Of a stretch of DNA of 64,000 bases, positions 21,594 to 27,359 are shown piece after piece; position 1 is the first letter of the stretch, and each line of letters opens with the position of its first letter. The stretch lies in assembly GCA_021613535.1 (NCBI GenBank), contig CP075492.1, positions 3,348,001 through 3,412,000 on the forward strand, in the 5' to 3' direction. Below the pieces are notes generated by a model, which had not been told where the DNA came from, did not search any database, and saw only the letters and a program-made list of their open reading frames with translations. Made by a program: the position numbers and the translations under genes. This DNA comes from Adineta vaga (taxonomy: Eukaryota; Animalia; Rotifera).

Positions 21594-22494
21594 AGAATTA
21601 TACCGATGAATGGTATTCTTAAAACCACTAAATAATGGTTGAAATACGTTATTCTATTCAATTTTTGTGGACAAACCAGTATTTATCTTTTTTCTTTATT
21701 GAAATTATAAATATGATCGAAGCAAAATGCATAAGAATTATATTGTTCCTATATAGAAATAAAAACTGACTTTTTATCAGTGAAAATGAAACACAAAAAT
21801 GATTTGCACTTTTTCGGATTATTGAGCATTGATGAATTTTCGATTCCTATTCCGACAATATATATTAAATTCTTCTTGTTATTCAAAGAGCGCGTCGAGA
21901 TGTAGAACATCGCTAAATACTTTTTTAAATTAGCTTCGTTTTTTTATCATATATTCAATTCTATGTAACTGGATAAAAGTTTTATATAAGCACACCGACG
22001 CTCCGAATATAATGATTCACTTTTGAAAATGACACAAGTTATAGTGACGAGTATTATTTTGAATTTGAGCTGTCACGAAAAAAATACCCAAACTATACGC
22101 GTTTTATTTTTCTTTTCAATGTTGGAAGTTTCCGTTAAACCATCAGTTTTGTTTGGTTTCTCTTTTCTCCACTCGAAATGAGAAAGAAAGAGAAATAAAA
22201 TATAAGATAACAGAAATATATGTTGACTAAGCAACTCGTAAACTGCAAAACATTTTAGTCAGTTCTGTATACGTGATTGTGCGAAAAAAACCTTGCTTTT
22301 TACCTTTGAATGTGAAATATGTTTCTATGATTTCTTGAGAATGTTTGTTTTTCACCTACATTCATCAAATCATGTGCATTTATTCTCATGAAGATTAAGT
22401 GTTTGTTTTCTTTGAATTTAGAAAAAATTCTAGTGAACCATTTGTCAAACTTTTAATTGTAGAATTACTTATTTTTACGTTAAATCATCGTTCG

Positions 22495-25400
22495 ATGGAT
22501 CAAGAAATGCAATCAGGATCTCAATACGATTGTTCTTCGTTCGAATGTTTCGCTACGACATCTACATCACATCAGATTCAAGAATCACTTGAACTTCAAA
22601 TTGTCAACGATCTTCAAGAAAAATATCGACCACGCTACAAGTCCGATATGATTTTGTCTATGGAAGGAGATCAAATACTACGCTGTGTAAGAGATCGTTT
22701 TGGCAACAACCACGTGACACTAAAAGTAAGTTAAAACTGATGGGGAAACAGCGCAAACTCTGGGACTCTGAGGATTCGAAGTTCTCTCCTCCCTTCAGTT
22801 ATCGTTTAATCTCTTGTGTTTGTACTTATATAGATGACACCACACATTCAAGGAAAAATTCGAGTCAATTGGCTTACGATTTCAGATAAAACCGGACAGC
22901 GATATATCATGCCGTATCATATTCAAGCAAGAGATGGCTCACATCTAATTCCCGATTCTAATTCGATCATTTTCGATATTAACACTGATGACGATGGATT
23001 TATGAAGTTAGATATATCTTTGTTTGTACTAAACTGCGGTAATTATTTTTGCATTGAATTTAGATTAAAATTAGGTTTATGCAAAACTACATGGAGAGAG
23101 TTGGAAGGATCTCAACCGTTATCTCTTTTCCAACCAATCACTGATGCATTACATACATCTAATATATTACCGCATGCACACTTGTCACCTAAACGCTTGA
23201 TTAGAGAATTTCGGCTCGAAAGATCTCAACTGGCATTCACTTTATGCACGAGAGGTCAGAATGAATCATCTGTTCCTCAATGGCATACAACTGTATTTTC
23301 AAATGTGATGACAGGTATGTCAAAGTATTTATTCCTCATTTGACTTTGCAAATTACTTTTATTTGACAGAAGTGTCAAGCAGTTTTGGAACACAACCTAA
23401 AAAATTGAGTCATTTCTATATGTTCCCATCAAACACTGACATACGAAATGATCACGAACAACAATTATCGACGGTTGAAGATACAGTGGAGCGCAAAAAA
23501 CGACAAAAACTAGATGCCACAGAGGTAATGATCATCAAATAAAAAGCGATTTGACAATTTCTATGCACAATTGTTTTAAAAACAAGAGGTTTTTTTATTG
23601 TAATGAATCTATTTGAATTATATAGAATATGGAAGAACCGCAATCAACAATCAATGCCGAATCAATGGTCAATGTATCTCTTCTCTCTTTACCTACCGAA
23701 ATAGTTCATTGTATTTTCGATCATTGTGATACGCGAACAATTTTTTCTATGCGTCGTGTCTGCTAGTAGATATATGCTTGTGCTAACGCCTACAATCGGT
23801 TCAAACTCATTTGCAATGCAACACCGTCATCGTTTGCAGAGTCTATTTTTCGACATCTTCGACCCGAACGAGTTGTTTCACTGATCATCTTCGATACGAA
23901 TGACATTTTTAGTTCCAAACATGATGAAGTCAATTCATTCTATTCACTCTTGGATAATCTTGACTTTACTCGACTGCGCTCGTTAACTTTTCACTCAGTG
24001 TCCGACGCATCGTTAAAGTATTTTGTAGAAAATTGTTTGAAGTTGAATTGTTTAGTTTCAATTTCAGTCGAATCGGAACAGTCCCTTGATAAGAGAACAT
24101 GGGCGTTTGTTTTATCAACATTTAGTCAATACAATCTTCGAAAACTGTGCATGAGTAATATGGAAACTTTGATGGGAAATATATCATGGCCAAATCAATG
24201 GAATCTAGAACACTTGGAGATTGATGATTGTACTTACAATTCGTATCTTGCCATTCTTCAACATTTGCCTCATTTGAGAACGTTCTCTATGCGTACTTGG
24301 ATTATTGATGATGTTGATGAACAGGCATTATCATCATCAGACAACACATTTACTGCGCCATTAGAATCATTGACCATGCGAAACTGTTCACTTTCTACAT
24401 ACTATCTCGAAGCATTACTGTCGCTGACACCTTCACTTCGATATCTTAAACTTGTTTCTGCTAGAGAAGTGTTTGACTCGTTTTTTGATAACGTTTATTG
24501 GGAAAAACTCATTTCTGATCGACTACAAAAACTGCATAAATTCGAATTTATCTTCTTTCATACTTACAACAAAAAGGATGATTCAATTAATCTTGACGTT
24601 CTTGTTGCATCATTTCGATCATCGTTTTGGCACGATGATAAACGATGGTTTATAGTCGGTGCTTACTTCTTAAGGAAAAATGAGATCTGGCTCTATACGA
24701 CACCTATACATTTCCCTGGTATTACAGATTTACTTCGACTTGAAACATCATGGACGAATAATGCCTATCACTTAACACAGAGACCACTGAATCGAACACT
24801 TGACACATCTTTAGATGAGGTATATATGAAAATTTATTAGATACGACAGATATACACGTTCGTTGTTTTACTATTCAAAATTATCAGACACTCACTATAC
24901 TTGATCTTCATTCGGTTGAGATCAGTCATCAAATGATACAACATTTGATTGGTGCTTTACATGAAAACACGGTAAACTTCATTCTCTAATGATCAGTCAT
25001 ATTCATATTTACATGTTTCTATTTAGTCACTTGTTGAACTCAATCTTGGTGGAATTAAAATCGGAAATGAAGGAGCAAAAGCTCTTGTCCACACTTTACA
25101 AAATAATAAAGTGGACCGCATTTTCTGATCTAATCTTTGTCAACATTATCTATATTTTCTCTTTCAGACACTTACAATACTTTACCTATGGCAAAATCAT
25201 ATTCAACAGACAGGCGCAAAATATCTCGCCGATCTTTTACGTACCAACACGGTCAGTTCTATCTTCTACTATTTGTTTAAATTATTATTTGTATTTTTCT
25301 CTATAGACACTAAAAGAATTGTATCTTGGAAACAATCCGATTCGAGATCAAGGTGCACAATATCTCGCTCATGCTTTACAAAACAACACAGTAAATAGCT

Positions 25401-25800
25401 GTTTTCTATTCATTTTTCTCATCAACCTATAATTCTTCACGCAGACACTCACAACACTCGATCTTCATGCTAATGGAATTGGAAATCAAGGCATAAGAGA
25501 TCTTGCTAATGTCTTAAAGAATAACAAAGTAAATCGAATTTTTTCGTTATCATTTCTAATTACAATTTTCATTTTTCTCTTCGTACAGACACTCACTACC
25601 CTTGGAATTGGATACAATCATATCGGTGATGAAGAAGCACAATATCTTGCTAATAGCTTCAGAAATAACTCGGTAAGCTACACTTTCTGCATATTTCTTT
25701 CGTTTTACAGTTTCATATCTCTAAACAGACACTTCAGCATTTGTATCTTGGCGAGAACGATATTTCGACGGAAGTATGGCAGCATTTTCAAACTGATTAA
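22495..25800 (+). CDS. Rel-homology-like domain + basic NLS + F-box + LRR protein (12 exons); in-frame TAG TAG at 23764-23769
   Basis: Exons 22495-22725, 22834-23006, 23064-23314, 23370-23525 and 23626-24819, then six 84-nt LRR exons and a final exon ending TAA at 25800, all GT-AG and phase-compatible. RHD-like LQIVNDLQEKYRPRYKSD ... FRLERSQLAF..TVFSNVM; NLS RKKRQKL; F-box LLSLPTEIVHCIFDHCD..MRRVC. Confidence 0.7.
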
Positions 25801-26183
25801 TGCATCCGATCCGATTTTGTTCTTTTAGAAACTTTTTTCGAGATGTTCCTTTTCTGAGATGGCTAATTTCTAATAAATGTACTTAATCTTTACTAGAGAC
25901 ATGGATTTTGACTTCCGGAACCAATCCAAAAGTAGAAAATCAATCGTTTTTATGAATGGAAAGTATCGAAATTATATACATAGCACGAAAAAAAAGCCAA
26001 CATTTCCGATAGAGAACACTGGTCTATGAAGAAATCGAACTTCTATTTCTCTATCACAGAGTAAAAAGTGTTTTCATGACCAATACTTTTGGTATTTCCT
26101 AAGTATAAATGATTTTATTTCGATATTACAAAAGTATAACAAAAACAAAAATGAGATCGTAAAAAAATCACATATATTAAAAT

Positions 26184-27359
26184 TTAATTTGCCTGAAAAT
26201 GTATTTGAATCCACTGATTAATATTGTTCAATGTATTTTGTGCTTCGGGAAAGAAGGAGAAAAACAATGGATAAATATGTATCATATGTAAACCTTCCTC
26301 AAAGATAACATTCATATTTGCTTCTTGTGCTTTTTGAAATACTCGTTTTGAATCATCGTATAATAGTTCAGCAGTTCCTACAGTGATATACATTGGTGGA
26401 AATCCTTTGAATGAACCAAAGAGAGGACTGTAGTGAGGATTGTGTGGAGATTGATTGTTAGCCAATACTTGTGCAGTAACCCATCGAACATCGTCATGAG
26501 TAAATAATAAATCAATTTCAATATTATGAATAAAACTTTCACCGGATGCAGTCAAATCTGACCATGGCGATAGAACAATTACTCCAGATGGAATTTGTAA
26601 TTGTTGTGTGACTAGAGTTTGAATTGTAAGAAGAGCAAGACCACCACCTGCAGAATCGCCAATAATAATAATCTGAGATGGCGAAATACCCTGACGCAGT
26701 AGAATTTGATAAACTGCAATGGTATCATTAACAGCAGCAGGCACGGAATGTTCAGGACTCAGACGATATTCTACATGAAGAAATGACTCATTAAACATTC
26801 GAGATAATTCGCATTCAAATCCGCTATAACCTAAGAAAACAAAATAAACATGAATTATATCCTAAATGGATGAAAACAATGGAGAATTTACTGTGAATAT
26901 CTCCTATTAAATATCCTCCACCATGCAGATAGATAAATAATTTATCTGAATTTTTTTGAAAACTTCGTACAGGATAATCAATCCAATAGGTATCGACTGT
27001 ATGCCTATCATATTCAAATGTGTCTTTGATGATTCGACATTGTGACGATTTCGGAATCATATCAGACATAACTGATTTTGAACGCATGTCTTTGAGTAGA
27101 GTAATTGCATCAGCTAATGGATCATATTCTGGTATCGGTCTTATACGTATTAAGTTTTCAAAAGCACGATATTCTGCACTTAATGTTGGTCGAGTTGCAT
27201 CAGATATGAAAGAATGTTTCAATGTTAAGAAACAATGTCACGAATGAGAAGATACTTGATGTTCGTTGATTTGTACCATAGAGGAATGACAATCGTCAGA
27301 ATCAAAATGAAGAAGCTTAATTTCTTGAAAAATCCAAGAAGATGGTTAAGTAATAACAT
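26184..27359 (-). pseudogene. Hormone-sensitive-lipase family alpha/beta hydrolase with N-terminal TM; frameshift near 27240
   Basis: HGGGY, EYRLSPEH, GDSAGG, LSPWSDL, catalytic E and H motifs; intron 26831-26891; the ATG at 27359 is in a different frame from the 27222-26892 segment. Confidence 0.8.

Follow-up and report, generated by a model that had tools for sequence, protein, structure and literature searches.

A probable Rel-like, F-box and leucine-rich repeat fusion family in Adineta rotifers, with a probably decayed copy in Adineta vaga

This report concerns a 64,000-nucleotide stretch of the genome of the bdelloid rotifer Adineta vaga (C3:3348001-3412000 of the 100.8-Mb, six-contig assembly; hereafter the window, with positions counted from its first nucleotide) and, within it, a gene of 12 exons on the forward (+) strand at 22495-25800. 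The gene lays out, in order, an N-terminal domain resembling the DNA-binding half of Rel/NF-kB proteins, a linker with a basic motif like a nuclear localization signal (NLS), an F-box, an irregular leucine-rich repeat (LRR) region, and an array of LRRs of the ribonuclease inhibitor (RI) type. Taken as a whole, the reading we hold to be probable is that the gene belongs to an Adineta-specific family of Rel-like/F-box/LRR fusions, that intact copies may serve as a DNA-tethered receptor of the Skp1-Cul1-F-box (SCF) ubiquitin ligase, and that the window copy has decayed. What appears to be new, judging from the sequences, is the joining of the Rel-like and F-box/LRR families. An earlier note on this DNA, made by a model from the letters, knew of no architecture combining a Rel homology domain (RHD), an F-box and LRRs; the literature that we searched (rotifer Rel/NF-kB and Adineta or bdelloid F-box-LRR proteins) likewise yielded no description of this layout or of its Rel-like family.

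Assignment of the N-terminal domain draws on its predicted fold. Residues 25-228 of the window protein, encoded by exons 1-3, were taken from the deposited protein UJR07350.1 and modeled by AlphaFold2 with a 17-sequence family alignment and no templates, giving a predicted local distance difference test score (pLDDT) of 85 and a predicted TM-score (pTM) of 0.83. When this model was compared with the PDB by Foldseek, ranks 1-44 were all NF-kB p65, p52 or p50, c-Rel, RelB, Dorsal/Gambif1, NFAT1 or TonEBP (E 2e-7 to 1e-3, with moderate TM-scores of 0.53-0.57), and generic immunoglobulin (Ig) folds ranked only below them. VIA-align gave Z 11.3-13.9 against Rel/NFAT structures over 150-182 residues at 13-18% identity, compared with 8.1 for velvet, 7.0 for p53 (6-7% identity) and 6.9 for MRF/NDT80. 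The structural match spans model residues 5-204, and the aligned ranges (p65 19-186, Gambif1 48-222) correspond to the N-terminal domain of the RHD (RHD-N), ending at or just past its end. A shape search of the ESM Atlas returned rotifer-only clusters in its first four places (TM 0.72-0.88), one of which has PF00554, the Pfam RHD DNA-binding family, in 14% of its members; arthropod NF-kB p110 clusters followed at TM 0.68-0.69, and Rel, RelB, NFAT and Relish clusters fell at 0.61-0.69. In a search by language-model features, the best named matches were all PF00554 clusters (0.93). Together these results support a very diverged RHD-N DNA-binding fold, and the structure prediction proposed in the earlier note came out in favor of its Rel-like domain. 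As a separate observation, another rotifer-only Atlas cluster of the same Rel-like shape carries an OTU deubiquitinase domain in 70% of its members, a candidate second fusion of the Rel-like family to the ubiquitin system.

Within exon 1, an R-P-R-Y-K-S-D motif (22627-22647, +) recalls the Rel recognition-loop motif R-x-x-R-x-R-Y-x-x-E, which contacts DNA bases. Among the 17 family members its R, Y, K, S and D vary little or not at all, the ortholog from A. ricciae having E, and its position is consistent with the Rel recognition loop as far as the alignment ranges of the model can place it (model residue 8 corresponds to p65 residue 19). The loop diverges after R-x-R-Y; we considered pseudogene decay as the cause and rejected it, as the intact A. 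ricciae ortholog, with which the window copy groups at 100/98, has the same divergence. No IPT/TIG dimerization domain was matched by Pfam in UJR07350.1 or in the 861-residue A. ricciae protein, and the Rel-like domain is instead followed, after a linker of about 50 residues, by the F-box. Nor was there any Ank match, the C-terminal part consisting of F-box and LRRs instead, so that both absences reported in the earlier note held up.

The 12 phase-compatible exons of the earlier note, with the peptides it quoted, all lie where it had placed them, and every intron is GT..AG by open reading frame (ORF) and splice-site reading. The model comprises 860 codons, terminal stop included (25798-25800, +). 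Exon 1 (22495-22725, with an ORF and a splice donor) contains the initiation codon and encodes the opening strands of the Rel-like domain, exon 2 (22834-23006) the middle of its beta-sandwich, and exon 3 (23064-23314) its end; exon 4 (23370-23524) encodes the linker, and exon 5 (23626-24819) the F-box followed by an LRR domain of FBXL type. Exons 6-12 (24888-24971, 25027-25110, 25168-25251, 25307-25390, 25445-25528, 25589-25672 and 25729-25800) encode the RI-type LRRs, all on the + strand. For transcription, we relied on contigs from three runs in two studies, guessed to be RNA, aligned over 22400-25900. These putative RNA contigs confirm 10 of the 11 introns (1, 2, 3 and 5-11) as GT..AG joints exactly where predicted, including 22725/22834, 23006/23064 and 23308/23364 (with the cut shifted by +6, equal to 23314/23370). 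They place the 5' end of the transcript at or before 22468 and its 3' end near 25878, at a low depth of 3-7. The locus is therefore transcribed and is correctly spliced at the confirmed introns. Of the two junctions that the earlier note had proposed to seek in RNA, 24819/24888 was seen, joining exon 5 to the RI-type LRR exons at exon 6, but the junction between exons 4 and 5, across the GT..AG intron 4 that links the two halves (23525-23625, 101 nt, +), had no contig. The locus is annotated as UJR07350.1, "hypothetical protein I4U23_011636 [Adineta vaga]" (551 aa; 22495-24840), a model identical to exons 1-4 plus parts of exon 5, which adds a spurious intron to jump over stop codons and runs into intron 5, in disagreement with the RNA contigs.

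Downstream of the Rel-like domain, exon 4 contains a basic R-K-K-R-Q-K-L motif (23492-23512, +), a putative NLS that resembles the NLS of p50. The TVERKKRQKL-type motif singled out in the earlier note has been conserved across the four fusion genes described below (window, A. vaga C6, A. steineri and A. ricciae). The F-box (23680-23808, +) is interrupted in the window, where PF00646 matches at E 1.4e-6 over profile positions 1-28 of 43 and the match ends at 23763; in intact genes it covers positions 1-41 of 43 (E 3.4e-9 in C6 and 8.4e-10 in the 861-residue A. ricciae protein). A full-length, open-frame F-box was thus found in C6 and A. ricciae and is lacking in the window copy. The F-box match predicts docking on Skp1. 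The rest of exon 5 (23809-24819, +) would form an irregular, FBXL-type LRR domain, the C6 equivalent of which was modeled: about 340 residues after the F-box start gave a three-helix F-box bundle and a strand-helix solenoid at pLDDT 80, with COI1, TIR1, SKP2, FBXL3, Dia2, FBXL17, FBXL2 and KDM2A as best PDB matches. The seven RI-type repeats of 28 residues (24888-25800, +) are encoded one per 84-nt exon, the last exon being 72 nt with the stop. Four of the seven repeat exons match LRR_6 (PF13516) at E 2e-4 to 8e-3, each alone falling under the curated cut-off, and the A. ricciae ortholog matches above it (E 1.6e-11). The F-box, degenerate LRR region and seven RI-type LRRs listed in the earlier note are therefore borne out by PF00646, the C6 model and the LRR_6 matches.

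All 12 pieces occur in order at only four loci that we found, in three Adineta species. The paralog on A. vaga chromosome 6 (C6:940500-946800, minus strand, the gene itself at about 942,700-946,100) is open throughout, the A. steineri locus on contig CAJOAZ010005790 is open to the contig end, and the A. ricciae protein (P0078) is an 861-aa product of one annotated gene, with Pfam F-box and LRR_6 matches and without Rel annotation. The search for paralogs with the same architecture and an open frame, which the earlier note had recommended, was accordingly successful. In C6, as a side observation, the intron between exons 8 and 9 is gone, and an in-frame 15-nt remnant adds five residues. Current annotations hide the layout: the products are named hypothetical or uncharacterized proteins or, in A. 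ricciae, "F-box domain-containing protein"; the C6 model UJR34769.1 omits linker and F-box; neither A. vaga model reaches the RI-type exons; and in A. steineri the locus, annotated as two genes, is divided between two models (CAF4112970.1 at the locus), with the F-box in neither.

Each half of the fusion belongs to a larger family. Paralogs of the Rel-like exons occur at six places in the A. vaga genome by single-sequence search and at about 15-18 loci by profile search, with clusters of tandem RHD-N-only genes at C2:4.30-4.33 Mb and C5:13.10-13.12 Mb. A typical relative has about 380 aa, with an acidic N-terminus, RHD-N, a zinc-ribbon-like C-x2-C...H motif and a basic tail; in a Rotaria protein (P0043) and an A. 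ricciae protein (P0082) the Rel-like domain occurs twice in a single chain. The 54 family matches that could be traced, out of 1.84 billion cluster representatives searched, were all bdelloid (Adineta, Rotaria, Didymodactylos). Exon 5 is a member of an F-box family that numbers at least 71 loci in the A. vaga genome. The Rel-like domains of the four fusion genes form one clade (98/92) nested among RHD-N-only genes, the window copy pairing with A. ricciae (100/98), and the exon-5 modules are likewise a clade of their own (99/98) inside the F-box family. Both halves are monophyletic, and RI-type LRR exons are already present in the closest F-box paralogs that lack a Rel domain; the sequences thus suggest that one fusion event, in an ancestor within Adineta, placed a unit of Rel-like domain and NLS before an existing F-box/LRR gene.

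The window copy itself is broken. Two adjacent in-frame TAG codons (23764-23769, +; codons 317-318), which the earlier note did not mention, lie inside the F-box in exon 5, so that the layout it described is present in order but the exons cannot encode the whole chain. At this site C6 and A. steineri read K-Q, with AAA CAA in C6. Over 22726-23798, introns included, a DNA contig from a 2013 run is 1.5% different from the window sequence, and it is therefore an alternative allele. It shows no difference at 23764-23769, thus keeping both TAGs, and it adds a C>T change at 23734 (+; codon 307, CGA to TGA; depth 86.5 of 86.5) ten codons upstream. Both alleles are transcribed, because the RNA contigs contain variants of both haplotypes. 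The 26 listed exonic differences between alleles (17 non-synonymous, 9 synonymous; 34 further differences are unlisted) stand in a ratio close to neutral expectation. Read-through or recoding of the stops was considered and rejected, because the TAGs are two and adjacent, the other allele has a TGA as well, and the paralogs have ordinary K-Q codons. From its sequence, the window copy would make at most about 316 residues, namely the Rel-like domain, the NLS and half an F-box, and the one-chain sensor or transcription factor that the earlier note had drawn from it is prevented by F-box stops on two alleles. It is most likely a young, decaying, transcribed pseudogene.

Several observations weigh against the reading offered here and have to be set beside its rivals. 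Contrary to the earlier note's expectation of membership in PF00554, that profile gave no match at E<=10 to single exons or to ten full-length family members, and a profile of the 17 family sequences found no Rel protein among PDB sequences, with chance matches only at E>0.6; a six-frame genome scan with PF00554 gave no matches, but its controls were equally without match. Intron 4 is spanned by no RNA contig among the three runs, and one 113-nt RNA contig starts within it, at 23597. Two RNA contigs across the stops carry 2-3 unlisted differences, the TAG codons at 23764-23769 being read from the two DNA sequences. In the tree, the exon-5 branch of the window copy does not exceed that of intact C6 in length, from which it follows that inactivation would be recent. 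Because neither the Pfam RHD model nor the PDB profile search matches anything, Rel family membership rests on the fold and the short motif, and the domain could in principle be an unrelated or convergent Ig-like beta-sandwich with a predicted Rel-like shape. The profile results, a model built from just 17 sequences and the moderate PDB TM-scores all fit such a domain; we nonetheless judge it very improbable, given how clearly Rel/NFAT (Z 11-14, 13-18% identity) stand apart from every other p53-like fold (Z about 8 or less, 6-12%), the R-x-R-Y motif where the structural alignment ranges place the Rel recognition loop, independent feature-based matches that go to PF00554 clusters, and rotifer clusters of the same shape that partly reach PF00554.

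The uncovered intron bears on whether the locus is one gene or two adjacent genes: a Rel-like and NLS gene (exons 1-4) and a separate F-box/LRR gene starting at ATG 23629 or at the usual family Met, with a promoter of its own or with spliced-leader trans-splicing, a process that rotifers use, at the 23626 acceptor. Beyond the missing contig and the one starting at 23597, read-through of the exon-4 donor meets a stop within 1-6 codons at three loci, the A. steineri annotation has genes of 273 and 313 aa, and stand-alone members of the F-box family begin with Met at the equivalent position, a few codons before the F-box. Among Logan and JGI ORFs of the protein collection, none derived from a transcript runs full length across the exon 4/5 junction, the only such protein being the genome-annotated one of A. 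ricciae. Two genes nevertheless seem unlikely to us: in three loci the gap is just 74-101 nt (about 74-80 nt in C6 and A. steineri), with GT..AG ends and phase 0 at either side, the 13-15 codons from the acceptor to the old start Met are open in all four fusion genes, the halves are co-inherited at four loci in three species, and the annotations of A. ricciae and of A. vaga both use this junction. Retention of intron 4 would yield a Rel-like and NLS isoform of about 273-277 residues (reading on through 23525-23542 and its equivalents), the form annotated in A. steineri. We give about as little weight to a functional truncation, by which the window copy would now be a short Rel-like factor with an NLS and the F-box/LRR exons an untranslated tail. 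Exons 1-4 are open on both alleles, both are transcribed, and typical relatives in the family are RHD-N-only proteins some 380 aa long whose C-terminus carries a basic motif. A premature stop far upstream of the last junction normally triggers nonsense-mediated decay, however, and decay is to be expected here, with over 1 kb and seven introns lying between the stop and that junction; expression is low (contig depth 3-7), and over exons 1-5a there are seven non-synonymous differences, the extra stop included, against four synonymous ones, with no sign of constraint.

Just downstream of the gene lies a 204-codon ORF (26184-26798, -) with a G-D-S-A-G-G motif typical of alpha/beta-hydrolase esterases.

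If the fusion reading is correct, one member of a bdelloid RHD-N family without an IPT domain, together with an NLS-like linker, would have been set before a gene already consisting of F-box, FBXL-type LRRs and RI-type LRRs. Intact copies (C6, A. steineri, A. ricciae) would then be nuclear SCF substrate receptors with their own Rel-type DNA-binding module: docked on Skp1/Cul1 by its F-box, such a receptor would bind a substrate or ligand with its LRRs, and the whole complex would be brought to specific DNA sites by the Rel-like head and the NLS. We propose only tentatively that intact copies, recognizing a ligand or substrate through a variable LRR array, act as a DNA-tethered, LRR-guided ubiquitin ligase receptor, or as an LRR sensor directly coupled to a Rel-type transcription factor, and that they would be, along with the OTU fusions of the family, part of a bdelloid-specific rewiring of Rel signaling around ubiquitin. 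The earlier note's suggestion that the F-box might recruit SCF for the protein's own processing, as in p105 or Relish, is pure speculation.

In animals, Rel/NF-kB proteins are the central transcription factors of immunity and stress, and to our knowledge they are, in every described case, controlled from outside by ubiquitin ligases. Multiplication of the Rel DNA-binding half without its dimerization domain, with one branch joined to an SCF adaptor that bears a recognition-type LRR array, would offer a natural experiment in pathway rebuilding. Adineta has no canonical Toll-like receptors, and almost nothing is known about its immunity (PMC8609888, PMC6043800). The broken window copy is of limited value, and study is better directed at the C6 paralog and the gene of A. 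ricciae.

Comparison with known systems shows both kinship and departure. With NF-kB, Rel and NFAT proteins (PF00554 plus PF16179) the rotifer domain shares an Ig DNA-binding fold of the s type (Z 11-14) and a basic, NLS-like motif after the domain, and its R-x-R-Y-x-x-D/E motif would lie, as theirs does, in the first loop; unlike them, it lacks IPT/TIG, is invisible to Pfam, is only about 15% identical, is followed by F-box and LRRs, and belongs to a family confined to bdelloid rotifers in the searches made. The p105/p100 proteins and insect Relish, whose clusters are among the closest shapes to the rotifer N-terminal domain, likewise combine in one chain a Rel-type head, C-terminal repeats and an SCF ubiquitin link. 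In those proteins, however, the tail is ankyrin-based and IkB-like, and the chain is an SCF substrate processed after SCF-dependent ubiquitination, whereas the rotifer fusion has an F-box and LRR tail and would itself be an SCF subunit. The nearest precedent for a chromatin-tethered SCF-type adaptor is the KDM2A/KDM2B/FBXL19 group (CXXC, F-box and LRR), which also has a DNA-binding module, F-box and LRRs in one chain; the rotifer fusion differs in being Rel-like rather than CXXC, in its extra RI-type LRR array, and in having no JmjC or PHD domain. Closer to home, the bdelloid F-box family with one exon per LRR has exon 5 and the 84-nt LRR exons in common with the window gene, and the RHD-N-only genes of A. 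vaga belong to the same divergent Rel-like family as exons 1-3; the two families are joined only in the four Adineta loci found.

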